From the sequence record PV231353.1: 64,000 nucleotides of DNA. One strand, written 5' to 3'. Within the stretch, counting starts at the first letter, position 1; each line of letters opens with the position of its first letter. The position numbers and the translations under genes were made by a program. The notes beneath the pieces were generated by a model. That model was not told the DNA's origin. It ran no database searches and was given only the letters and a program-made list of their open reading frames with translations. Positions 6,370 through 31,300 of the stretch are shown here, piece by piece.

Positions 6370-6845
6370 CCGAGGCCCGCATCTATAACGGCGCGGCCGG
6401 CGCCATCTTCATCCGCAATCCCAAGTACGGGGTGATCGAGACGGACTCGCTGGTGGTGATCGACCGCCCCGACGATCTCGAACATCACGGCCTGATCGGG
6501 CGGCTGCACATCCAGCCCGGCATGGACACGGTGATCGTCAAGGCCGGCGTCGTCCACGTCAACGTCTACCCCTGTCAGGTCCGGCCGCTGGCGCTGGGCG
6601 AGCGCATCGGCGATCCCGAGGCCAACGCCCACCTCCAGCAGATCGCCGAGATGGTCGGCGAGGGCGAGGACGTCGGCGCGGCCTGGGAGAGCGTCCAGGC
6701 GATCATCTTCGAGCGCGACAAGCTCCATACGGCGGCCGAGCGCGTGCGCGACTGCCTGCGGTCGGCGAACCTGACCGACTCGGTGCAGGACGTGCGCGGC
6801 GAGATCGAGACGGCGGCCAACTTCATCGCCGAGGCCCTGGCATGA
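6366..6845 (+). CDS. hypothetical protein
   Basis: ATGA coupling, GC3 bias. Confidence 0.75.
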   Translation: MTEARIYNGAAGAIFIRNPKYGVIETDSLVVIDRPDDLEHHGLIGRLHIQPGMDTVIVKAGVVHVNVYPCQVRPLALGERIGDPEANAHLQQIAEMVGEGEDVGAAWESVQAIIFERDKLHTAAERVRDCLRSANLTDSVQDVRGEIETAANFIAEALA

Positions 6846-9066: not shown

Positions 9067-9344
9067 TGCGACGGTTCATGCGGGCGCCCAGCCTGTCGAC
9101 CTATCCGATCCCCTACCAGCTTGAGCGCTACCTGCTCAACAACCGCGACGTGCGGCTGGTGCGCTGCCGTGACGGCTGGCGCCTCCAGGGCCGCACCGGC
9201 GTCTTCCACCGATCCCGTGTACCCGGCACCGGGCGCTACTCCTGGCGGTCGGTGGCGATCTGCCTGGACAGCCTCTGCGTGATCGAGAGCTATGACGAGA
9301 CCATGCGCCCCGACGTTGTCGGGCTCGCCAAGGACGTGGTGTGA
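9066..9344 (+). CDS. hypothetical protein
   Basis: TGATG coupling. Confidence 0.65.
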   Translation: MRRFMRAPSLSTYPIPYQLERYLLNNRDVRLVRCRDGWRLQGRTGVFHRSRVPGTGRYSWRSVAICLDSLCVIESYDETMRPDVVGLAKDVV

Positions 9345-20731: not shown

Positions 20732-20802
20732 CGAGGCCCGTTAACCATGTTTGTTAACCTCCGCCGGGGCCTTAACCCTAACACGGCGAGGGTTAACAGG
20801 CC

Positions 20803-20959
20803 AGGGACCCTTCGAAATTAACCCTTCGGGGACCCTGGGAAATCGACAGACGGGGACCCTGGCCATTTTCCGGCTGGGGACCCTGCCAAATTCATCGCCG
20901 GGGACCCTCCGAAATTCATCTCTGGGGACCCTGGCGAATTCAGAGCCGGGGACCCTGGC
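20803..20959. repeat. 24-bp-period array of GGGGACCCT (7 copies)
   Basis: Cores at 20804, 20828, 20852, 20876, 20900, 20924, 20948. Confidence 0.9.
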
Positions 20960-20964
20960 GAATC

Positions 20965-21168
20965 ATGGAGCCGACGATGGCCGGATTTCTCAACCTGATC
21001 CCGAACCTCGCGCCGTTCGCGCTTTGGGGCGTCCTCCTCTGGATCGCCGCCGAGGTGGTCTGGAGCGTCTGCCTCTGGGTCTATGGCCTGCGGACCCTGT
21101 TCAAGCTGCACCGCGACGATCTGGCCGAGGCGATCAGCTTCGAGCGGGCGCTCAGCCCCTTCGACTAG
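20965..21168 (+). CDS. small membrane protein
   Basis: One long hydrophobic segment. Confidence 0.6.
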   Translation: MEPTMAGFLNLIPNLAPFALWGVLLWIAAEVVWSVCLWVYGLRTLFKLHRDDLAEAISFERALSPFD

Positions 21169-21184
21169 GCGCGGCCTGCCGACC

Positions 21185-21211
21185 TAAGTCACGGACTGTA
21201 GGTTTCGTGAC
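21185..21211. promoter_or_regulatory. AAGTCAY-N14-RTGAY palindromic site (copy 1 of 6)
   Basis: GTCAC-14-GTGAC; other copies at 21494, 30000, 51941, 52081, 58012. Confidence 0.7.
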
Positions 21212-21251
21212 AAGGTAGAATATTCCACAGCAAATTCAAAGGCTTATAGCC

Positions 21252-21488
21252 ATGCTGATCCACCGTCTCTTCCACGATCTGACCGTCCGTATCGTCGTTT
21301 TGGGGTGGATTTATGCCAAAAAGCCCCGAAAAACCGCTCCAAAAGGGCATAATTTTCAGCCGAATCCGCCGGCCCAGGCCGTCCAGTGGTACGGCGACGT
21401 GGTGCGCTCGTTCCTCGAATCGCTTGAGGCGCTCAAGCCGGCGCTCACGAAACGCGGCTGGCGTCAAGCCATCTCGACCACCGCCTGA
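21252..21488 (+). CDS. hypothetical protein
   Basis: 78 aa, weak SD. Confidence 0.5.
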   Translation: MLIHRLFHDLTVRIVVLGWIYAKKPRKTAPKGHNFQPNPPAQAVQWYGDVVRSFLESLEALKPALTKRGWRQAISTTA

Positions 21489-21561
21489 CCTAAGTCATAG
21501 ACCGTGGGCTTCGTGACAGGATCACGCTTTCGTTACCGCTCCAGCCCTTGTGAGGCCTCGG

Positions 21562-21666
21562 ATGTTCGCCTTTCTCCGCCGGCTCAGCCTCGCCGCCGTC
21601 CATGGCGCGCTCTGGGCGATCCTGCTGGCGATGGTCGCCGTGGGCGGGCCGCGCCGCGCGCCCTAA
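21562..21666 (+). CDS. 34-aa hydrophobic peptide
   Basis: GAGG SD; MFAFLRRLSLAAVHGALWAILLAMVAVGGPRRAP. Confidence 0.5.
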   Translation: MFAFLRRLSLAAVHGALWAILLAMVAVGGPRRAP

Positions 21667-21718
21667 AGCGCCATATCTGACGCATAAGGCCCTCTAAGGC
21701 CTCATCTGTGAGACATTC

Positions 21719-21754
21719 AACGCCCTCGTGTTCCTCTGAACGCGGGGGCGTTTT
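21719..21754 (+). terminator. intrinsic terminator
   Basis: AACGCCCTCGTGTTC-CTCT-GAACGCGGGGGCGTT then TT. Confidence 0.6.
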
Positions 21755-21862
21755 GACGTCGGCGCGTTTTCGACTTGACGCGCGAGCGTTTTGACGCGGG
21801 CGCATTTTTGATCTCGACGGGCGAGCGTTTTGACGTCCGCGCATTTTTCAACTTGACGTCGT
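21748..21862. repeat. three 38-39-bp tandem repeats rich in TTGACG
   Basis: GCGTTTTGACG units at 21748, 21786, 21825. Confidence 0.85.
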
Positions 21863-21881
21863 TTCATTTACCGGGAGCGCC

Positions 21882-22132
21882 TTAGGGTTAACGCCGGCCG
21901 CCGAGCCCTGGGGCGATTTACCACCGCCACGTTAACCTAACGCCTGTTAACCTATCGGTTGTTAAGGTTAACGCCCCGTTAGGGTTAACGCCCCTTAACC
22001 CTGCCCGCGTTAAGGTTAACACCCCGTTAAGGTTAACGCCGGGCGCGCCCAGGCCCTACCGGGCCATACCGGGTATGACCGGCCCTACCCGGCCCTACCG
22101 GTTAGGGTTAACGCCCCGTTAGGGTTAACGCC
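21882..22132. repeat. GTTAAC / CtrA-site cluster with 17-bp unit GTTA(A/G)GGTTAACGCCCC
   Basis: Nine GTTAAC; TTAA-N7-TTAA at 22016; TTAA-N7-TTAG at 21968 and 22108. Confidence 0.85.
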
Positions 22133-22137
22133 CGGCG

Positions 22138-22244
22138 AGCGCCCAGCCCCGCCGTAGCGCCCCTACGGTTCGAAGAGCCCAGCCCAGCCGGGTCCCGCCC
22201 GGCGACCCCTACACCCTAGAGGCTATTTCTTAACAAGAGGTAAA
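22138..22244 (-). ncRNA. candidate sRNA 1 from a leftward CtrA-type promoter
   Basis: Minus-strand TTTA-N7-TTAA-N11-TAGGGT; 54-nt core shared with 24102-24155. Confidence 0.45.
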
Positions 22245-22273: not shown

Positions 22274-22352
22274 TTTACTTTTTGTTAAGACTTTGCGCCC
22301 ATAGTCCCCCTTGTCCCCGCCGCATCCCGCGCCGGGCAAGGAGCTTCCCGCC
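22274..22352 (+). promoter_or_regulatory. CtrA-box early promoter and hairpin leader (first of 12 forward copies)
   Basis: TTTA-N7-TTAA-N11-CATAGT; other boxes at 22563, 23659, 24236, 24697, 25275, 25868, 27062, 28217, 30181, 30770, 31243. Confidence 0.8.
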
Positions 22353-22538
22353 ATGATCCCCGACTCGATCATGAACCCCCGCGACCATTTCCACCGTCTG
22401 CGCGAGGAAACCGCCCGCGCTCTGGTCGAGGCCTTCGCCGAAACCGACCCCGGCGAGGATTACCGCGCCGAAGAGAAGGCCGGCGCTTGGGTTGTCGCCT
22501 ATTACGACGCGGCGGGCGAATTCGTCGCCTATCTCTAA
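22353..22538 (+). CDS. early hypothetical protein
   Basis: AAGGAG SD behind CtrA promoter. Confidence 0.75.
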   Translation: MIPDSIMNPRDHFHRLREETARALVEAFAETDPGEDYRAEEKAGAWVVAYYDAAGEFVAYL

Positions 22539-22637
22539 CCGCCTTCGCCCCCTGGCGCCGCGTTAACGGTTTGTTAACATGTTGGCGCCAGGGTCGCCCT
22601 AGCCCGGCGCGTCGCCGCGCCTTCGGAGAAAAACGCC

Positions 22638-23441
22638 ATGCTCTACACCCCCGCCGCCCGCCGCCTTCGCGGCTATCGCGAAACCGCCGCGAAGAACGCC
22701 GAAATTCACGCCCGCCCGCACATGGCCGACAACGTCGCCGGCTACAACGAGTCGGTGTGGCCGACGACGGCGCTAGGCGTCGCCGCCAAGGCCGGCGCCT
22801 TCAAGCGCCCCGAAACCGCTGGCAACTGGTCGGAAGATCGCAAAGCCTATTACGCCCCCGCGTGGCCGGCCGGCTGGCGCGTGCTAGGCACGGCGCAAGA
22901 GGTTTGCCACAAGGAAGGATCGCGCCGGGTCGACCATTCCGGATGGTACACGACGCCCGACGACTACAGCGCCACGCTTTCGGGCTATGTGCTGCAAATC
23001 CCCGCCCGCGACGGCCGCCCGCAATACGTCGCCGGGACCGCCCATAGTGAATGGGACGGGGTGACCCTCTATCCCGCCGACCGCTACGACAACCCGCTTG
23101 ACGCGGCGAGCGCCGCCGACCGTCACGCCGAACGCGACGCCGAAGAGGAACGCGAATATCAAACCGCGTGGCAAGCGGGCGTGCGCTACGCCGAACTCGG
23201 AGCCGAAGCCAAGGAGGCCCGCAAGGAAGCGCTGGCGATCCTCGCCGAACGCCGCAAGGTCAAGGGGCTGGAAACCCCCGCCTTGTGCGGCGCGATCCGG
23301 GCGCAGGTCGAGGCCCTGCTAAGCCGGATCGAAGAGGCGCGCGCCTCGCGCGCCAAGCTCAAGGAAGGCGAGGACTCGCGCCTCATGTTCTACCCGTCCG
23401 CCGCCATGGTCGCGGCCTTCAATGACGGCGCGGCGTCGTGA
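22638..23441 (+). CDS. early hypothetical protein
   Basis: GWY...GYVLQIP...Y.AG...AAD..AE..AEEEREY. Confidence 0.8.
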   Translation: MLYTPAARRLRGYRETAAKNAEIHARPHMADNVAGYNESVWPTTALGVAAKAGAFKRPETAGNWSEDRKAYYAPAWPAGWRVLGTAQEVCHKEGSRRVDHSGWYTTPDDYSATLSGYVLQIPARDGRPQYVAGTAHSEWDGVTLYPADRYDNPLDAASAADRHAERDAEEEREYQTAWQAGVRYAELGAEAKEARKEALAILAERRKVKGLETPALCGAIRAQVEALLSRIEEARASRAKLKEGEDSRLMFYPSAAMVAAFNDGAAS

Positions 23442-23628
23442 AGGTCGCCCGCGATAGCTTCGCCGTGTTCTGGACCCTCCCGCAAGGCGGGGTCAATTTC
23501 ATGCAGACATGAAACGGGCGCTCTACCCGACCGCCCGCGACGCCGCCCGCGCCTTCCGCGCCATGTTCCCCCGTGACCGGGTCAAGAGCGTCCGCGACGC
23601 GTCCGGGCGGTTTCTCGCCTTCCGCTAG
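23438..23628 (+). CDS. small early protein (apparent frameshift near 23500)
   Basis: VKVARDSFAVFW...NF joins (H)ADMKRALYPTAR...FR*. Confidence 0.5.
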
Positions 23629-23737
23629 GCCAGAGCGCCCCGGACCTTTTCCGGGGCGTTTACTCTTTGTTAAGACTTTGAGCCCATAGTCCCCTTGTCG
23701 CCGGGCAATCCCGCCCGGCGCTTTGTAGGATCGCCCC

Positions 23738-24031
23738 ATGTCGCACGTCTACGACATAGAATATACCGACACTTTCGCGGGGGAGGCTAATTATTCATGG
23801 ATTCGCCGCGCGGCCGTGACCATGCCGGAATTGACCCATTATGGGTACGATGGCGGGTCTAACTACGCCAAGGCTAACCGCGTATTTAACCGCGAACTCA
23901 TGAGGCGCGCCAAGGCCGCCATGGGCTTGACGGGGGTGCGCGGCGTCTCCGCCGCGCATGGCGACAATCTCGAATTTCGCCCGCACCGGTCCGCGACAAT
24001 CCTTTTTGTGACCTACCGCGACGCGGACTAG
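23738..24031 (+). CDS. early conserved phage protein
   Basis: YTDTFAGEANYSWIRR...EFRP. Confidence 0.8.
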   Translation: MSHVYDIEYTDTFAGEANYSWIRRAAVTMPELTHYGYDGGSNYAKANRVFNRELMRRAKAAMGLTGVRGVSAAHGDNLEFRPHRSATILFVTYRDAD

Positions 24032-24101
24032 GCCAGAGCCCGGCGCCGTCCCTTGGCGCCGGGCGTCACGCTTGCCGGACGCGTTAACCATGTTTTTGAA
24101 A

Positions 24102-24206
24102 AGCGCCCAGCCCCGCCGTAGCGCCCCTACGGTTCGAAGAGCCCGGCCCAGCCGGCTCCGCCGGCTACGGGATCAATCTAGCGCCAAAGTCTTAACAAGA
24201 GGTAAA
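24102..24206 (-). ncRNA. candidate sRNA 2 from a leftward CtrA-type promoter
   Basis: Minus-strand TTTA-N7-TTAA-N11-TAGATT; shared 54-nt core. Confidence 0.45.
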
Positions 24207-24315
24207 CGCCAGCGCCCGGCGATATCTTTTTCACGTTTACGTTTTGTTAAGACTTTGGCGGATAGTGTTCCCTTGCCGCCGGGCAATCCCGCCCCGCCGC
24301 TTGGAGCTTGCCGAC

Positions 24316-24699
24316 ATGGGGAAAACCCTGTTCCGCGAAATGGCCAAGGTCGCCGCCCCGGTGATCACCGCCTATCATGCCGACCTAGAAATTCATGACC
24401 GCAAGGTCATTGAAGGCCTGAAGGCCGGTGACGTCATCCTTTGGGCGCCCGACAAGGCCGGGACGACTCTTATCGTCCTGGCCCGCCAAGGCCGCCCCAA
24501 TCACCGCGCCGCCGAACACTTCGAGGCCGCCCAATGTCGCCAGCCCCCGGCGTGGTATCTGGCCAGCGTGTCGCACAATGGCGAGGCCGGGCAATGGCAA
24601 TTTGGCCCCGCCCCGGACGCCCCCGCCATCGTCGCCCGCTGGGCGGAGCAAGCCGCCCGCGATACCGCCCCGGACCCGGTGCGCGAGCTTCACCTGTAA
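24316..24699 (+). CDS. early hypothetical protein
   Basis: GGAG SD behind CtrA promoter. Confidence 0.75.
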   Translation: MGKTLFREMAKVAAPVITAYHADLEIHDRKVIEGLKAGDVILWAPDKAGTTLIVLARQGRPNHRAAEHFEAAQCRQPPAWYLASVSHNGEAGQWQFGPAPDAPAIVARWAEQAARDTAPDPVRELHL

Positions 24700-24759
24700 A
24701 CCTTTTGTTAAGGCCTCGCCGCTACGGTGGCGAGGTCAAACAACCAAGGAGCGCCGACC

Positions 24760-24957
24760 ATGGCCCCGCGAGGCGATACAGGCGAAGCCATGACCAAGGT
24801 CATAAGCCTAGACCTAGACAAGGCCACGGCCGAAGCCGTGAGCGAAGCGCTCGCCCATGTCTGGCGTGAAATATACGATCGCGAGCGCCGGGGCCAGGGC
24901 GGCAAGCTTCGCGCCGTGCTGGACAAGCTCAACACCGTTACCGACGCCCGCCGCTAA
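24760..24957 (+). CDS. early hypothetical protein
   Basis: AAGGAG SD. Confidence 0.65.
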   Translation: MAPRGDTGEAMTKVISLDLDKATAEAVSEALAHVWREIYDRERRGQGGKLRAVLDKLNTVTDARR

Positions 24958-24970
24958 AGGAGTCCAAGCC

Positions 24971-25243
24971 ATGCGCTACAACGTCAACGGGACCGGTTTT
25001 AAGGGCGGCTCCGCCCCGGCCGTCCCCGCCCAAGGCCTGACCGGTCACGCCGACGCCGCCGGCCTTTGGGTTCCCTCGCGCGAGCATATCGCCGCCATGC
25101 TCCCGCAACGCTGGCGCCACGCCTTCGCCCGCGCTTCGTTTTGGTATGACGCCCGCGACAACAAAAAGCCGTGCCGCGCCGACCTCTACGACTCGCGCGG
25201 CCGGTACCTGACTCAGGTCTGGGCGCATCCGGTTTTCAGCTAG
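24971..25243 (+). CDS. early hypothetical protein
   Basis: AAGGAG SD; FWYD...PCRADLY. Confidence 0.75.
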   Translation: MRYNVNGTGFKGGSAPAVPAQGLTGHADAAGLWVPSREHIAAMLPQRWRHAFARASFWYDARDNKKPCRADLYDSRGRYLTQVWAHPVFS

Positions 25244-25355
25244 GCCAGGACGCCCCGGAAAATCTTCCGGGGCGTTTACCTTTTGTTAACCTCTGGCCTC
25301 TAGGGTGACTTTCGCCGCCGGGCAATCCCGCCCGCCGCTTCGGAGTTTCGGCCCC

Positions 25356-25871
25356 ATGCCGCAATTCGTTCTTGATACCTCCGGCCAAGTCGCCCCGCCC
25401 GCTTCGGCCAAGCTTTGGCCGCATCCGCTGCGCTGGAATCAACTGAGCCCCTTCGCCCAAGGCTATATCGAGGCCCTGTTTTTCACTGAAAGCGCGCCGG
25501 GCGTGACCTCGCGCCAGTTCATGACCAAGGCCTATCAAAAGCGCCTCGAAAGCGGCGAGGCGGACGGCGCCTTGCCGGGCGACGTCGGCTTTTCCGACCT
25601 CGCGCCCGACACTCTCAACGCGATCTTGAACGATTGCGGGCGCTTCCAACGCGACAACGCCGACGCCCTGGCCAAGGCCTATGACCACGGGGGCGACTCG
25701 GGCGACTACGACGAGGCCGCCGCCGGCCGGGATTATTGGTACACCCGCAACGGCCATGGCGTCGGGTTTTGGGATCGCGGACTCGGCGAGATTGGCGAGG
25801 CCCTGGCCAGCGCCGCCCGCTACAGCGAACGTTACGCGACGTTTTACAACGGTAAAGTTCACCTCGATTAA
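25356..25871 (+). CDS. early conserved phage protein
   Basis: GYIEALFFT...DC..F...AGRDYWYTRNGHGVGFWDR. Confidence 0.8.
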   Translation: MPQFVLDTSGQVAPPASAKLWPHPLRWNQLSPFAQGYIEALFFTESAPGVTSRQFMTKAYQKRLESGEADGALPGDVGFSDLAPDTLNAILNDCGRFQRDNADALAKAYDHGGDSGDYDEAAAGRDYWYTRNGHGVGFWDRGLGEIGEALASAARYSERYATFYNGKVHLD

Positions 25872-25954
25872 GCTTTTGTTAAGACTTGTCCTCTAGGTTT
25901 GACTTCGCCGCCGGGCAATCCCGCCCGGCGGTCCTCTTCTCAGGATCGCCCCTT

Positions 25955-27006
25955 ATGACCTCTCATTCCATGGTTGCGCACCGTTGGGCGCAGGACGACG
26001 AGAACGGCCGCACCGCGCGCGGCTTCAACATGTATTTCGAGCGCTACGGGCGCGGCGCCGACCGCGTCAACGTGATTTTTCCTACGGGACTCACTTCCCG
26101 GCCGCCGCCTTCGTGACCGACGCGCACGGCCGCCGCGTGGTTCTCTACACGACGCACCGCCGGAGCATTTCGACCGCGAAACACCTTTCCCACATCCGCC
26201 ACGCGATTCCGTCGGGCGTGCCGGTGTTTTCCGTGCCGAACGTGTCGCGGATGCACAAGCCGGGCGGCGCGGGCGACTTCCACGGGGACAACCTGCGCGC
26301 CTATATCGAGAGCGCCGCCGGCCTCGCCGAAAAGGCCAAGCGCGCCCGCGTCAACGGCCCTTGGCTGCTTAGCCAAGCCCGCGACCAACTCGCCGAAGCC
26401 GCCCGTTACGCCGACGCCTTCAAGGTCAAGGGCTTCAAGGTTCCGGCCTTGGAAGACGTCGCCGGCCAATGGGCGAAGATGACGGCCGCCAAGGCGCGGG
26501 CCGAAGCCAAGGCCCGCAAGGAAGCCGAAAAGGCCGCCCGCGAACGCCGCGAAGCCGAACGGATCGCCGACGCCGAAGCCTTCGCCGCATGGATGCGCGG
26601 CGAGCGCCAGAGCGCCCCGTTTAGCTACCGGGTGCGCGATGACGGGACCGTCTATCTTCGCCGTTTCCGGGGCGTGGTCCGCGACCTGCGCAGCCAAGCG
26701 CGCGACGGCTCGCGCGTCGATGAGCTGCAAACCTCGCAAGGCGCGGCCGTGCCGTGGGAACACGCGGTCAAGGCCTTCCGGTTCATTAAGCTTTGCCGCG
26801 AACGCGGCGAGAGCTTCCACCGCAACGGCCGGGTGATCCGCGTTGGTCACTTCCAAGTTGACGCGATCGGCGCCAACGGGGACATGACGGCCGGGTGCCA
26901 CCGGTTCGCGTGGGATGAAATTGAACGCCTCGCCAGGGCCGAAGGGGTTTTCGACCTCCCCGCCGACGCCGGCGCCGTCGAAACCCGGCAAGCCGAACCG
27001 GCCTAA
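25955..27006 (+). CDS. early hypothetical protein (apparent frameshift in T-run near 26078)
   Basis: MTSHSMVAH.WA...IF joins SYGTHF...; C-terminal TSQGA.VP...GHFQVD.I..NGD..AGCH. Confidence 0.75.
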
Positions 27007-27141
27007 GCCCGCCCGACCCTCCAGCGCCCCGGCTCCCCGCCGGGGCGCTTTCGTGTACGCGGTAACCTTTTGTTAACTTCTGGCCTCTAGGGTGACTTTC
27101 GCCGCCGGGCAATCCCGCCCGCCGGCCAAGGATCGCAGACC

Positions 27142-27440
27142 ATGAATCTTTTCGTTGTCGCCATTGACCCCGCCCTCATCCCTTCGGCCGCCGGCTTCGT
27201 GGTCGCCTCCCCTACGGGTGCGGCAAGTGGCGCGCGTGCGTCGGGAGCGAGGCGGACATGATCGCGCTTCGCGACAAGATGCGCCGCGCGCACCCGGCCC
27301 CGGAAGGCTACAGCGTCCAGCCCCTGGCGTCGTTCCTGGCCTATCTCGAAACGGTCGGGGATAGCCCCTATGACCAGTTTCGCGCCCGCGACGCCGCCGC
27401 CCGCATCCTTGACACCCTGACAACGCACCTCGCCGCCTAG
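27142..27440 (+). CDS. early hypothetical protein (apparent frameshift in C-run near 27210)
   Basis: AAGGA SD; MNLFVVAID... joins YGCGKW...MIALRD. Confidence 0.6.
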
Positions 27441-27494
27441 TCCCGCCGCCCCCGGCCGCGCGCCGGGGCGCTTTCCTCGAAAGGATCGCCGACC

Positions 27495-27797
27495 ATGACA
27501 ACCCGTCTTATCGCCGTGCGCGGCCCGACCGCCGCCGAACTCGCCGACCCGTCCAGCCGCGCGGGCGGCGCCGAAGTCGTTTTCGAGCGCCGCGACCGCG
27601 AAGGCCACACGCGCCTTGTGTTCGCCGCGACCTGCTACGGGTCATATCAGCAATGGGGCGAAACCCGCGACGTGCTCGCCGACAACGTCGAGGCGGTCAC
27701 GCTCTGGGCCGAAGGCATGGCGGCCGTTGCCGCCCTCATCGACGAGAGCGACGACGACGAGGGCGACGACGCCCCGGCCGACGACGGGGAGGCGTGA
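27495..27797 (+). CDS. early hypothetical protein, acidic tail
   Basis: AAGGA SD. Confidence 0.75.
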   Translation: MTTRLIAVRGPTAAELADPSSRAGGAEVVFERRDREGHTRLVFAATCYGSYQQWGETRDVLADNVEAVTLWAEGMAAVAALIDESDDDEGDDAPADDGEA

Positions 27798-27800
27798 GCC

Positions 27801-28220
27801 ATGCGCACAACCAAGGCTCAACGCTTCGCCGCCATCGCCTTTGACGCCCTGGCCAAGGCCCTAAGCGAGCCGCGCCAAGCCGTCGCCCGCATGACCAAAT
27901 GGGAGGGGGCGGGCCATAGCTTCGCCAACCTGCAACGCGATTATGAGCGGTACGGCCCCGGCGCCCGCTCATGGTTTGGCCGGGCTGAAATGCGCTTCTT
28001 TGGGACGCGCCTTGAGGCCGCGCCGCTGGACTTCCCGGCGCTGGGCTGCACCCTGTTTCTGACCTCCGAAACCCCGCCCGGCGCCGGCCGGGTCTGGACC
28101 CTTCGCGCCTATGTCTGGGCTTCGGCCGATATCACTACGCTAACCCATGGCGACGAAACCGACGCGGCGACCGCGCAAGCGGCCTTTGACCTCTTATGGC
28201 GGGTCCTTTCCGGGCGGTAA
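27801..28220 (+). CDS. early hypothetical protein
   Basis: WF...EMRFFG.RL. Confidence 0.75.
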   Translation: MRTTKAQRFAAIAFDALAKALSEPRQAVARMTKWEGAGHSFANLQRDYERYGPGARSWFGRAEMRFFGTRLEAAPLDFPALGCTLFLTSETPPGAGRVWTLRAYVWASADITTLTHGDETDAATAQAAFDLLWRVLSGR

Positions 28221-28296
28221 CCTTTTGTTAACTTCTGCCCGCTAGGGTCTTCTTGCGGCCGGGCAATCCCGCCCGGCCGCCCAAGGATTGGATCGC

Positions 28297-28569
28297 ATGA
28301 CCCGCGCTCAAGCCCTCGCCCAAATGAACGCCCTTCCCGGTATCATCGCCTCCTTTGAGCGCGAGACGGGCGAATATCGCGTGACCCTGCGCTTTGGCCC
28401 GCTCCCCATGGGGCGCGGCGCCCAAGAGTGGATGCGCGCGCGCCGCGAAGCCGTCGCCAGCTACAGCGACGACAAGGCCGACGCCCTGGCCACCGCCCGC
28501 GACATGTCCGCCCGTTGGGAGGCGATGAGCGCCGAACAACGCGCCCGCCTCTATCACAACCCCGCCTAA
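28297..28569 (+). CDS. early hypothetical protein
   Basis: Behind CtrA promoter 28217. Confidence 0.75.
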   Translation: MTRAQALAQMNALPGIIASFERETGEYRVTLRFGPLPMGRGAQEWMRARREAVASYSDDKADALATARDMSARWEAMSAEQRARLYHNPA

Positions 28570-28636
28570 AGCCCCGCGCGCCGCCCTGGCCTTCGCCGGG
28601 GCGGCTCCCTTAAACCCCTCGCAAGGATCGCACCCC

Positions 28637-28930
28637 ATGACCGCCAAGTCCGCCCGCAAGCCCCTGACCAAGGAACAAAAGACCCGCCGCCGCGAAACCC
28701 GCCGCGCCGCCCGCCTCAACTGGTCGGATGAGCGCCGCGCCCGCGAATTCGAGCGTCAAGCCCGCTTCTTCCTGATGATCGCCACCCGCGCCCAAGGCGC
28801 CGGCCAAGGCCAGGAAGCCGCCCGCCTCGCCACGGTCGCACAACGCAAGGTGACCAACTGGCGCATGGCGCAGGCCTGCGCCCGGATTAACGCCCTGGCC
28901 GCGCATCCGTTCGCGGCCGTGGTCGCCTAA
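28637..28930 (+). CDS. basic early hypothetical protein
   Basis: AAGGA SD, Arg-rich. Confidence 0.7.
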   Translation: MTAKSARKPLTKEQKTRRRETRRAARLNWSDERRAREFERQARFFLMIATRAQGAGQGQEAARLATVAQRKVTNWRMAQACARINALAAHPFAAVVA

Positions 28931-28943
28931 GGAGGCCCCGCCC

Positions 28944-29126
28944 ATGACGCACCCTCACGCCCTGGCGCTGATCGCCCTCGCTGAAAAGGTGTTGCCGCTT
29001 ACCCGGCTGCACCCGCTCGACCAACGCGCCGCCGCCGTCGATCTAATCGGCGACCTCTACCGCCTCGCCGACGATATCGACGCGGCCCCGCAAGCCCCCG
29101 CCCTGGCGCAACCGAAGGCCGCCTAA
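28944..29126 (+). CDS. early hypothetical protein
   Basis: AAGGAGG SD. Confidence 0.7.
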   Translation: MTHPHALALIALAEKVLPLTRLHPLDQRAAAVDLIGDLYRLADDIDAAPQAPALAQPKAA

Positions 29127-29127
29127 C

Positions 29128-29433
29128 GTGACCGCCCTCCAACGCGCCGGTTTCGCTGCGCACCGTCGCGGCGTCAAATGGTGGAACAACCCGCATCGGG
29201 CCGGTTCCCCCGCCGCCTATCAATGGGACCAAGGCCACACCCTCGCCCGCCGCGACGCCGAACAAGCCGCGCTCGACGCCTTGGAGGCCGCCGACTTGGC
29301 CCCCGAACCGGGCGAGGTGATCACCGAAGCCTTGCGCCCCTATCTGGGCGCCGCCCTGGCCGAAAACCACGCCGACGACGTGCTAGACGCCCTCACGCGC
29401 GCCGGCTTCCAAATCACCCGCAAGGAGGCCTAA
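29128..29433 (+). CDS. early hypothetical protein
   Basis: GTG directly after upstream stop. Confidence 0.65.
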   Translation: MTALQRAGFAAHRRGVKWWNNPHRAGSPAAYQWDQGHTLARRDAEQAALDALEAADLAPEPGEVITEALRPYLGAALAENHADDVLDALTRAGFQITRKEA

Positions 29434-29438
29434 AGCCC

Positions 29439-29999
29439 ATGACCGACTCCGCCAAGATCACCGGCGCGCTCGCGCTACTCGCCGTCGCGGCCGATAATCT
29501 CCGCCAAGGCCCGGCCATGTCCAAAGCCGCCGACAACGTCACCAACGTCTGTAACTACGCCCTGACGCGCGCCGTCATGCTCAAAGCCGCCGACCAAATC
29601 GGCGAGGCGCTGGGCGCCCTGCAAACGGGCGGCTATGTGATCGCCCGCCGTCGCGATGTCTTCACCGATGAGGGCGAGAAGCTGGGCGACCTGTTGGCGG
29701 CGCTTTATGACGCCGTCCCGAACTACGCCGTAAGATCGCAGCGGCTCGCCGACGCCCTGGCCCCGGCGCGAGATTACGTCTATCAGCCCCGGTTCCGGGT
29801 CAAGCTGGACGCCGCGCCCGGCGCGCTCTTGACCGACTGCGACACGGGCGCAACGGTCTATTTCCAGCCGGGCGACGACGCCGACGCCTTCCGGGCCGAA
29901 TTCGCCCCGTGGGTTCACGCCGCCAACGTGACGGCCGAAGGCGCGGCCCTGGCCTCGATGATGAACCCGACCGCCGAAGAGTATTTCAGCCCCGCCTAA
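29439..29999 (+). CDS. early hypothetical protein
   Basis: AAGGAGG SD. Confidence 0.75.
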   Translation: MTDSAKITGALALLAVAADNLRQGPAMSKAADNVTNVCNYALTRAVMLKAADQIGEALGALQTGGYVIARRRDVFTDEGEKLGDLLAALYDAVPNYAVRSQRLADALAPARDYVYQPRFRVKLDAAPGALLTDCDTGATVYFQPGDDADAFRAEFAPWVHAANVTAEGAALASMMNPTAEEYFSPA

Positions 30000-30109
30000 G
30001 TCATCATTCCTACCGTCTATGACTTGTCACCGGCCGAAGTCTTACCCGGTGACAGTCTGGGCAAGTAAAGCTCACTCTGGATTTTATGACTTAGCGCAAA
30101 GGATTGAAT

Positions 30110-30184
30110 TTGCTCGAAAAATTCCTAGAAGCTCACAAAGTCGTTTTCTGGCTGCTCTTGCTGGCCTGTTTGTGGCGCTTTTAA
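30110..30184 (+). CDS. 24-aa hydrophobic peptide (not in ORF track)
   Basis: AAGGA SD, TTG start; MLEKFLEAHKVVFWLLLLACLWRF. Confidence 0.45.
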   Translation: MLEKFLEAHKVVFWLLLLACLWRF

Positions 30185-30265
30185 CGGTTTGTTAACCCCT
30201 GGCCCTCTAGGGTCGAATTCCCGGCGCGGCAATCCCGCCGCCCGGCCTTCCTTCGGAGCTTCCTA

Positions 30266-30712
30266 ATGTTCGCTTCCGTGACCCTTCCCGCCCATGACGC
30301 CCAAGGCCTGAGCCTCGAAACCGTCCACATGGTTTTCGCCCGTGAACTGGCGCAACACTTCGAGCACGTAATTTCCGCCCCCGTGATCGAAAGCTGGACC
30401 GACGAGGAAACCGGCGCCGTGCAAGAGCAAGCCGCCGTTTGCTTCACCGTTTCGGCGACCCCGGCCGCGTGGGAAGCCAAGGGCGGCCGGCTCGCGCGCC
30501 GGCTGGAAAACCTCGCCGCGCGCTATGCCGCCGACTGCGACGCCCCGGCCCTGACTGTCACCCATTGCGACGGGCAAACGGTCTATGTCGGCGCTCTGGA
30601 AGCCCTGGCGCGCCCCGCCCCGGTGCAAGGCCCGACCCGCGCGGCGGACCCGGCTTTCCTCCCCCGCCAGCGTGAAGACAAGGCCGCCCGCTTCGATCGC
30701 CTGACCGCCTAG
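30266..30712 (+). CDS. early hypothetical protein
   Basis: Behind CtrA promoter 30181. Confidence 0.75.
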   Translation: MFASVTLPAHDAQGLSLETVHMVFARELAQHFEHVISAPVIESWTDEETGAVQEQAAVCFTVSATPAAWEAKGGRLARRLENLAARYAADCDAPALTVTHCDGQTVYVGALEALARPAPVQGPTRAADPAFLPRQREDKAARFDRLTA

Positions 30713-30730
30713 CCCCTGGCCTCCCCTAGC

Positions 30731-30759
30731 GCACCGCCCCTAGAAAGGCGGTGCGCTTT
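30731..30759 (+). terminator. intrinsic terminator
   Basis: GCACCGCC-loop-GGCGGTGC then GCTTTT. Confidence 0.65.
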
Positions 30760-30853
30760 TCTGTGTCTGTTTACTTGTTGTTAAGGAATAGCCTGCTAGT
30801 GTCTCCTTGTCGGCGGACGCATCCCGCGCCCGCCCCTTTCTGGATCGCTTCCC

Positions 30854-31246: not shown

Positions 31247-31300
31247 CCTCTTGTTAACACCTCCCGGCTATGGTCGGGAGGTCGCAAGGAGACACCCGAC

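Follow-up and report, generated by a model that had tools for sequence, protein, structure and literature searches.

What does a short hairpin do when it recurs, with the same loop, at the head of early transcripts of a Caulobacter phage? The question is raised by a 64,000-nucleotide (nt) stretch of sequence record PV231353.1 (the window; positions are counted from its first letter), which corresponds at 99.8% identity to Caulobacter phage RBC57, a phiCbK-like jumbo siphophage. Between 22.2 and 30.9 kilobases (kb) the window is the counterpart of the direct terminal repeat of Ccr2, Magneto, Karma and phiCbK. It carries early genes, and all terminal-repeat genes of those four phages are annotated as hypothetical. 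This early block consists of small plus-strand open reading frames (ORFs), many of them parted by a terminator-like hairpin that ends in GTTTAC, with TTGTTAA immediately after. A preliminary description had placed nine hairpins just behind predicted start sites and proposed that they are an undescribed cis-element marking early messages. The reading that we favour, at a probability of roughly 0.45, is that the hairpin is a cis-acting 5′-terminal mRNA stem-loop that protects and insulates early messages, and that its apex is under sequence-specific selection for a putative, probably widely conserved, partner.

Exact matching recovered all nine hairpins, seven of the form GGGC or CGGC, AAUCCC, GCCC or GCCG (class A) and two of the form CGC-AUCCC-GCG (class B). 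On the plus strand, the class-A sequence GGGCAATCCCGCCC stands at 23703, 24281, 25320, 25913, 27107 and 28261, its variant CGGCAATCCCGCCG at 30227, and the class-B sequence CGC-ATCCC-GCG at 22321 and 30818. The 10-mer GCAATCCCGC has seven exact copies in the window, all within 23.7–30.2 kb. Stems of 7, 9 and 10 base pairs (bp) had been described for the copies at 23.7, 25.9 and 28.3 kb; the last two figures hold (9 perfect bp plus a G.U pair, and 10), and for the copy at 23.7 kb we count 8. A covariance model, which the preliminary description had suggested as a check, was derived from 30 distinct class-A sequences found across 14 phages. Run on the window, it returned exactly the seven class-A copies, at 38–54 bits (E values of 3e-9 to 5e-6); the next match, at 21 bits, was the reverse strand of one of these copies, and all others scored 16 bits or less. 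The two class-B copies reach only ~10 bits with this model and are not separable from noise by it; they are supported by their homologous position and by the hairpin GGCGC-AUCCC-GCGCC of the relatives Colossus, CcrPW, BL57 and BL64.

Each copy lies downstream of TTGTTAA and a conserved (C/A)TAG -10 element, and TTTGTTAA occurs 11 times in the window against 0.16 expected. The promoter layout is (T/G)T(T/A)A-N7-TTAA, a CtrA box whose second TTAA lies inside TTGTTAA, followed after ~11 nt by a -10 element (C/A)TAGNNN that fits the CTA core of the Caulobacter sigma-73 -10 element. In sequence and spacing, this upstream part is that of a CtrA-activated sigma-73 promoter. For two phiCbK promoters, those of gp005 and gp018, binding of phosphorylated CtrA (CtrA~P) has been published, together with drops in activity of >29-fold and 5-fold, respectively, in a ctrA-ts strain and function with host polymerase in uninfected cells (PMC9437464); their RBC57 orthologues lie at 22571 and 30189. 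The gap between the -10 element and the first paired base is 4–9 nt at all nine sites (median 7), and the 5′ nt of the CtrA box lies 38–40 nt ahead of the stem. At the CtrA-activated promoter ctrA P2 the same nt lies at -39 relative to the mapped start (PMC4287350), and the predicted +1 of the phage transcripts is therefore the stem base. By -10 geometry, by calibration on ctrA P2 and by the canonical promoter of a metagenomic viral contig described below (L506), the stem starts within ~0–4 nt of the predicted +1, with ~2 nt or less between the predicted start of each transcript and the foot of its GC-rich stem-loop. The Shine-Dalgarno sequence (SD) and start codon follow the stem-loop after 3–25 nt. 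The hairpin is thus placed at, not upstream of, the predicted start, and the proposal that a structured cis-element opens the early leaders, always in sense orientation and ahead of the SD, is borne out.

The compensatory change in the stem, on which the preliminary description had relied, is likewise real and affects the outer stem. Across the 30 class-A copies, 88% of the cells of a 10-pair helix can pair, versus 32–54% when the 3′ partners are slid. Four pairs vary on both sides (pair 8 is GC in 13 copies and CG in 11), and the covariation score was reached by 0 of 500 shuffles, the sequences being related. Over a wider set, the 36 nt after the -10 element of 78 distinct CtrA-box promoters from the 14 phages have a mean folding energy of -15.7 kcal/mol, against -8.8 kcal/mol for random windows from the same loci and -10.6 kcal/mol for shuffles (Mann-Whitney P of 9e-25 and 2e-17). 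Orientation is fixed as well: 78 of the 79 copies of GC(A)ATCCCGC in terminal repeats lie on the plus strand, and the sole minus-strand copy stands ahead of a minus-strand gene in Rogue. Because an asymmetric apex is fixed in orientation, the outer stems are variable and complementary, and the element lies between +1 and SD, we favour a folded single strand, most simply nascent or mature RNA.

How much of this hairpin is conserved differs between the window and its relatives. Among 13 related phages, nearly every CtrA-box promoter found has a hairpin at about +1, with a loop that varies by class. Further classes are GGCGC-ACUUCC-GCGCC (Rogue, Swift and BL10), GGCGGGA-CGG-UCCCGCC and GGGCGGCGG-AUCGG-CCGCCGCCC (both in Colossus and CcrPW), GGGG-CCAC-CCCC (Rogue) and, in the window itself at 22606, GGCGCG-UCGC-CGCGCC. 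The orthologous gp004-type promoter has six different apices among relatives: AUCCC in RBC57, ACUCCC in phiCbK, Karma, Ccr2 and Ccr5, ACUUCC in BL10, AAUCCC in BL57, and the hairpins GGCGCG-AUCC-CGCGCC in Ccr29 and GGGG-CCAC-CCCC in Rogue. At the gp012-type promoter most phages have class A; BL57 has GGGCGGGGG-AUCG-CCCCCGCCC there (6890). The loop that had been called invariant is so within the window and gives way to others across relatives, even at orthologous promoters. Since loops differ both between classes and between orthologous promoters, the conserved general feature is a stable stem-loop at the predicted transcript start, with (A)AUCCC as the commonest of several apices. Within class A, alignment columns 9–25 (GCCGGGCAAUCCCGCCC) are invariant or nearly so, with both flanks variable, and the top three base pairs never vary, though compensatory changes would preserve the fold. 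The apex is under sequence constraint, and this constraint exceeds the needs of a generic stabiliser.

The same apex recurs in unrelated elements. The class-A 18-mer CCGGGCAATCCCGCCCGG matched 25 stretches in viral contigs, among them ~14 non-phiCbK-like families, and two loop-permuted controls matched 2 viral stretches each. Where this 18-mer occurs elsewhere, an SD and ORF lie downstream in 14 sense versus 5 antisense cases. The layout known from the window is found there behind unrelated promoters of sigma-70 type and ahead of SD and ATG. Contig L506 reads TTGACA-N17-TAGTGT-N7-hairpin-AGGAG-ATG, contig L512 reads TTGACA-N17-TAGAAC-N11-hairpin, and contig L517 (70% GC) has four cassettes, each with the -10 element TATACC, 5–6 nt, the hairpin, an SD and ATG. 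For the class-B apex, an SD and ORF lie downstream in 19 of 97 contexts in sense and 5 in antisense orientation, against 6 and 7 of 77 for its control, and a strict -35/-10 pair at the right distance occurs in 5 of 100 class-B contexts versus 0 of 78 for the control (Fisher P = 0.07). Examples are contigs L604 and L605 (TTGAC-N17-GATAAC, then a class-B hairpin) and the AT-rich phage L570, in which a GC hairpin lies between TAAATA and AGGAGG. A cultured phage has the hairpin too: in Klebsiella phage vB_KpnS_Op1_ER4, TTGACA ... TATAGG runs directly into GGGCAAUCCCGCCC, and the gene behind it is the one next to the small terminase gene, on its downstream side. The outer stems in independent contexts are complementary and unrelated in sequence (gatcg/cggtc, ggggt/gcccc, cccgg/ccggg), and in 32 of 129 contexts they lengthen the stem by 3 bp or more, compared with 3–11 when the partners are slid. 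In bacterial genomes, many contexts among the matches listed are non-random: the hairpin stands just 5′ of the SD of RadC-like JAB and DUF2958 genes (Pfam) in Variovorax, Xenophilus, Paucibacter, Luteimonas and others; it also lies ahead of a small zinc-ribbon gene in Firmicutes and of a cold-shock gene in a Rhodobacteraceae genome, and in a Caulobacteraceae genome it lies behind two palindromic operators and a TATGGT -10 element.

The hairpin can still be called undescribed. It matched no Rfam family: a search of the window from 19 to 34 kb at E up to 1 gave chance-level matches elsewhere only, and none of fifteen hairpin-carrying bacterial loci had a match at gathering score. A literature search found no description of the hairpin sequence in this sense, and a term search of the study of the phiCbK promoters (PMC9437464) gave no occurrence of a hairpin. 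For the metagenomic contigs L604, L506 and L517, a search for cultured relatives found none. The gapped patterns TTAA-N30-52-GGCAATCCCGCC and TTGTTAA-N-TAG-N-ATCCCGC, searched in viral and metagenome collections, gave chance matches and no relatives beyond known isolates among the matches listed.

Stem-loops that stabilise messages from their 5′ ends are known from ompA (hp1), the T7 gene 10 leader and the B. subtilis aprE and ermC leaders; a stem within a few nt of the triphosphate end blocks 5′-end-dependent attack and keeps the ribosome-binding site (RBS) free of upstream pairing. A protective and insulating stem-loop in the phage would work along the same lines. Each unit comprises a CtrA~P-activated promoter for host RNA polymerase, the hairpin at the predicted transcript start, and then the SD and start codon; the hairpin would act in cis on the RNA as a 5′-terminal stem-loop. 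The stem would conceal the 5′ end from RNase E and from RppH-type pyrophosphate removal, that is from 5′-end-dependent decay, and we propose that early messages would stay stable as a result. It would also shield the RBS from upstream sequence, so that small early cassettes, which phages exchange with one another, could shuffle without loss of expression. Base pairing, not sequence, is conserved, as defines the stabiliser family; the sequence constraint on the apex goes beyond that definition. On top of the generic role, the apical GC(A)AUCCCGC would be under sequence-specific purifying selection. Most likely it docks a putative partner that is conserved across bacteria or widely carried by mobile elements, because the same apex turns up without change behind unrelated promoters, in phages and mobile elements that are themselves unrelated.

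A broader version, which we regard as a long shot worth stating, would make GC(A)AUCCCGC on a GC stem a portable leader module of phages, integrative elements and plasmid-like DNA across bacterial phyla, which would dock a universally conserved machine (ribosome or RNA polymerase) on the 5′ ends of the earliest messages transcribed from newly entered DNA. The module would enhance translation or offer a stand-by site, or else confer factor-independent resistance to pausing, Rho or termination like that conferred by HK022 put RNA. On this broader reading, the hairpin would be a new class of small cis-acting RNA element, of which phiCbK-like phages hold the richest natural array (7–9 copies). Work on the Caulobacter cell-cycle model has phiCbK as its standard phage, and a leader element on nearly every early transcript would offer a handle on message stability and translation. 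An identical hairpin of 14–18 nt behind unrelated promoters hints at a general rule for the first expression of incoming DNA, and could serve synthetic biology as a host-independent insulator or stabiliser part. Should the apex have a conserved partner, the two would form a new small RNA-protein or RNA-RNA recognition pair.

Several observations weigh against a protective stem-loop with a selected apex. Such a mechanism explains only part of the conservation, since a generic stabiliser needs no invariant apex. The position of +1, on which the 5′-terminal placement depends, is itself predicted from promoter geometry. The sense strand has 26 interior G.U pairs and the antisense strand 31, a balance that does not single out the sense strand, and the antisense strand folds slightly better, so that sequence does not discriminate between RNA and single-stranded DNA; a CcrPW copy with two sense-strand G.U pairs is offset by the A.C mismatch of class B. 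In viral contigs, the counts for the class-B apex GGCGCAUCCCGCGCC (a 15-mer; at least 119 matches versus 85 for its control) do not show enrichment, and the at least 120 loci with exact CCGGGCAATCCCGCCCGG in bacteria, each species being represented by one genome, come from a search without a control. At the bacterial RadC and DUF2958 loci, moreover, ~130 nt of conserved sequence precedes the hairpin.

Table 1 Predicted promoters, leader hairpins and a candidate reader protein in the early block of the window.
Feature	Position	Strand	Details
CtrA-box promoter	22274..22307	+	TTTA-N7-TTAA, -10 TAGTCC; gp004-like gene
Class-B hairpin	22316..22336	+	CCCG.CGC-AUCCC-GCG.CGGG; leader of gp004-like gene; ATG 22353
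CtrA-box promoter	22563-22594	+	gp005 orthologue (phiCbK: CtrA-dependent, PMC9437464)
Different hairpin, equivalent position	22606..22621	+	GGCGCG-UCGC-CGCGCC; after promoter 22563-22594
CtrA-box promoter	23659..23692	+	-10 TAGTCC
Class-A hairpin	23697..23721	+	8 perfect bp (CGCCGGGC/GCCCGGCG), loop AAUCCC; SD GGAUCG; ATG 23738
CtrA-box promoter	24236..24268	+	-10 TAGTGT; divergent copy on minus strand at 24198
Class-A hairpin	24275..24300	+	10 positions with 2 C.C mismatches; SD GGAG; ATG 24316
CtrA-box promoter	25275..25306	+	-10 TAGGGT; directly behind terminator-like hairpin ending GTTTAC
Class-A hairpin	25316..25337	+	SD GGAG; ATG 25356
CtrA-box promoter	25868..25899	+	TTAA-N7-TTAA, -10 TAGGTT
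Class-A hairpin	25907..25932	+	9 bp plus G.U; SD GGAUCG; ATG 25955
CtrA-box promoter	27062..27093	+	GTAA-N7-TTAA, -10 TAGGGT
Class-A hairpin	27101..27126	+	5 bp, C.C, 4 bp; SD AAGGAUCG; ATG 27142
CtrA-box promoter	28217..28248	+	-10 TAGGGT
Class-A hairpin	28255..28280	+	10 perfect bp, 53.6 bits; first base is predicted +1; SD AAGGAUUGGAUCG; ATG 28297; heads six-gene unit
Weak candidate reader, 97 amino acids	28637..28930	+	Arginine-rich N-terminal helix (KEQKTRRRETRRAARLNW); PHROG 6524, no assigned function
CtrA-box promoter	30181..30213	+	TTAA-N7-TTAA; phiCbK gp018 orthologue
Class-A hairpin	30221..30245	+	Inner pair compensated (CGGC/GCCG), 38.3 bits; SD GGAG; ATG 30266
CtrA-box promoter	30770..30802	+	-10 TAGTGT
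Class-B hairpin	30812..30834	+	GGCGG.CGC-AUCCC-GCG.CCGCC, A.C mismatch; SD GGAUCG; ATG 30854

The preliminary description had noted that the loop AUCC is complementary to the GGAU-type SD of several of these genes, and a translational operator could be built on this, in which (A)AUCC pairs with GGAU(U/C) at the SD, through a pseudoknot or kissing interaction, and tunes or gates early-gene translation. The complementarity itself is real, with GGAUUGC in the phiCbK gp008 leader matching GCAAUCC at 7 of 7 positions and GGAUCGC at 6 of 7. SDs of the GGAU type are concentrated in the early block, including two internal genes on class-A-headed transcripts (27483 and 28625), and GAGGAUC or GGAUU SDs also lie behind the class-B hairpin in the unrelated contigs L604, L605, L574 and L642. 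Staphylococcal regulatory RNAs use UCCC loops to pair with SD-like tracts. Caulobacter provides a precedent of its own in loop A of CcnA, a C-rich loop that pairs with SD-like G tracts (PMC8959179). What makes such an operator unlikely is that the two partners do not covary: GGAUCGC stays unchanged whether the hairpin is of class A or class B, and also at internal genes, and GGAG, which can form only 3 bp with the loop, serves 16 of 31 class-A leaders and all class-C leaders. Geometry also speaks against it, in that the hairpin-SD distance ranges from 3 to 25 nt and a loop on a 10-bp stem can hardly reach an SD across linkers of 3–5 nt, and hairpins of other classes, with CGG, AUCGG and UCGC loops, occupy the same position. 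A boxB/nut-like site, by which a phage early protein would bind the nascent hairpin and let RNA polymerase read through the cassette terminators, was another of the functions first suggested, with a reader among the co-encoded small proteins. A short GC stem with a 5–6 nt loop, of which the stem top and loop are invariant, is what protein-bound hairpins look like, and many of the promoters are preceded by terminator-like hairpins. The candidate reader, the product of 28637..28930, has a conserved basic N-terminal helix (KEQKARRRATRRAARLNW) jutting beyond a helical hairpin (AlphaFold, predicted local distance difference test score 85), and its family also occurs in Colossus and CcrPW; KEQKARRRATRRAARLNW may resemble the lambda N arginine-rich motif. 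Pfam, PDB-sequence and fold searches gave no N-family or other informative match for this product: the PDB sequence search returned only composition-level Stm1 matches (E of 2), and Foldseek with the AlphaFold model only a generic helical hairpin. Among ten early proteins Pfam found only DUF7447 and a sub-threshold PGBA_C, and PHROGs assigned early proteins only to families of unknown function. There is no space for boxA between +1 and the hairpin, because the hairpin starts 4–9 nt after the -10 element, at about +1, without transcribed sequence ahead; with at least nine copies, each with its own promoter, read-through would be unnecessary. The protein family is confined to phiCbK-like phages, while the hairpin also occurs in other elements. 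That the hairpin is present in phages and mobile elements of unrelated kinds counts against a phage-specific reader. A reader encoded by the phage probably explains the element at most in part, and we consider antitermination through such a site quite improbable.

The element could instead act in the DNA, as an operator spanning +5 to +25, through which a repressor ends early transcription, or as a non-template-strand hairpin in the transcription bubble. The early genes of phiCbK peak at 15 min and then fall (PMC10688885), and TTATCCC heptamers are operators of the ribbon-helix-helix repressor Reg576 at establishment promoters of plasmid p576, an ATCCC-type precedent on mobile elements (PMC6294495). 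The balance of G.U pairs also fits DNA, in that it does not favour sense RNA. Outer stems that are variable yet complementary, both here and in independent contexts, are unexpected for a duplex operator, as is an asymmetric centre in fixed orientation to the gene for a dimeric palindrome binder, and the several hairpin classes of one phage would require several repressors; a DNA-level role therefore strikes us as rather improbable. The SciP motif, GCGNC-N5-GNCGC, located at -60 to -90 (PMC4287350), was rejected as the operator: class B reads GNCGC-N5-GCGNC, with the arms inverted, and sits at about +5. Least probable, to our minds, is that the promoter-hairpin units are cassette-boundary repeats that serve as recombination modules, their identity kept by gene conversion and not by any function of the loop. 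Such units do flank every small early cassette, and relatives cover 55–70% of the early block at 92–98% identity, with gene content differing by whole cassettes between close relatives. Class-A conservation is position-specific, with both flanks of the constrained columns varying, and the identity reaches unrelated elements, where gene conversion is impossible; a cassette boundary is, besides, compatible with an RNA function, not an alternative to it. Gene conversion between cassette boundaries may still contribute.

Further candidates were tried and rejected. CcnA as a trans-acting partner carries CCCC itself and targets GGGG, and loop pairing with a GGAU in the 3′ tail of 16S ribosomal RNA would have the wrong topology for an element 5′ of the SD. 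An N4-type hairpin promoter does not fit, as every copy has a CtrA box and -10 element upstream and the promoters are active with host polymerase (PMC9437464); a virion RNA polymerase gene was not searched for. CcrM GANTC and Dam sites are absent from the hairpin motif, likeness to a DnaA box is limited to the ATCC core, and mimicry of a tRNA T-arm or of the initiator anticodon stem is partial, class B not fitting.

Other observations concern the leaders and their surroundings. The 7-mer GGAUCGC is a recurrent SD plus spacer at 23728, 25943, 27130, 27483, 28285, 28625 and 30842; GAGGAUC(G/A)C precedes ATG after the class-B hairpins of the unrelated contigs L604 and L605, and GGAUCG forms the loop region of class-E hairpins in Colossus, CcrPW and BL57. 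A second promoter design, at 24705-24740 and 31251-31285 (also in Rogue at 6693 and 9950 and in BL10 at 9339), has TTGTTAA followed by an inverted repeat whose loop contains a -10-like CTA(C/T)GG, for example CCUCGCC-GCUACGGU-GGCGAGG and CCUCCCGG-CUAUGG-UCGGGAGG; this repeat could be an operator over the -10 element or an RNA hairpin on read-through transcripts. On the minus strand, promoters at 24198 and 22236, divergent copies of one CtrA-box promoter, drive a non-coding element of ~70–75 nt, GUAGCCGGCGGAGCCGGCUGGGCCGGGCUCUUCGAACCGUAGGGGCGCUACGGCGGGGCUGGGCGC (~24155..24085 and ~22195..22120). It opens with a hairpin at the predicted +1, and one copy ends in a U run. Its core is nearly invariant in Colossus, CcrPW, BL57, BL64 and Ccr2 (1–3 copies each), the terminal repeats of Colossus and CcrPW being otherwise highly divergent from that of the window. 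RNAalifold gave 22 pairs, 2 of them with compensatory change, and Rfam no match; these features make the element a candidate phage small RNA.

The conserved sequence at the bacterial loci is structured. Over ~130 nt (...cgccgtcaagg...cgcacgctggcggcc...gaacctgacggctgcgctgcggcgtgcc...) it precedes the hairpin and the RadC-like or DUF2958 genes in beta- and gamma-proteobacteria (loci L381, L398, L419, L425, L429, L443, L444, L465, L477 and L478). A search of Rfam with one copy (L429, 2350-2800, E up to 10) found nothing relevant. The conserved stretch may belong to integrative conjugative elements, as a single-strand promoter or as a leader RNA.

Upstream of the early block, 20750-22130 holds dense TTAA-N7-TTAA and GTTAAC(C) repeats, CtrA-box arrays of a kind that earlier work describes in terminal repeats of phiCbK-like phages (PMC9437464). 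In RBC57, the orthologues of phiCbK gp008 (350 amino acids) and gp009 (99 amino acids) are each split over two frames (25955..26116 with 25984..27006, and 27142..27261 with 27258..27440), apparently by frameshifts or sequencing errors. A related jumbo phage, Caulobacter phage RB23 (Bertelyvirus; locus L007, 4056-20400), does not use the module of CtrA box and hairpin; the promoter that recurs in its repeat is another one, gaaagc(t/g)gTTGAC...catgcgacaa.

Among known systems, the CtrA-site clusters of phiCbK-like terminal repeats are the same promoters as those described here, with CtrA binding and dependence shown for two (PMC9437464). The TTATCCC operators of Reg576 share with the hairpin an ATCCC core near promoters or RBSs of immediately expressed mobile-element genes, and differ in being duplex-DNA direct repeats upstream of the -35 element, not a hairpin (PMC6294495). 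Loop A of CcnA (CCCC) is likewise a C-rich loop on a GC stem, complementary to G-rich SD-like tracts (PMC8959179); CcnA acts in trans as a small RNA, whereas the loop here lies in cis in an mRNA leader and its pairing lacks support from covariation. The lambdoid nut site (boxA plus boxB) with N resembles the phage element in its short GC stem, 5–6 nt loop, conserved apex and place in early leader RNA. Here, by contrast, there is no boxA, the hairpin lies at the predicted very 5′ end, no N homologue was found, and a genome has nine or more copies, every one of them provided with a separate promoter and terminator. In T4-type phages, promoter-early stem-loops (PeSLs) are repeated promoter and stem-loop recombination units, and as in the phage described here they bound small early ORFs of unknown function in a plastic region; in the present case the stem-loop lies downstream of the start site, inside the leader, and the promoter is CtrA-dependent. 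With the 5′ stabilisers of ompA, T7, aprE and ermC the phage hairpins would share a stable stem-loop near the (predicted) 5′ end, an RBS directly after it, action in cis and freedom from a fixed SD distance. Those stabilisers share no sequence between genomes, whereas the apex GC(A)AUCCCGC is invariant over paralogues and recurs elsewhere.

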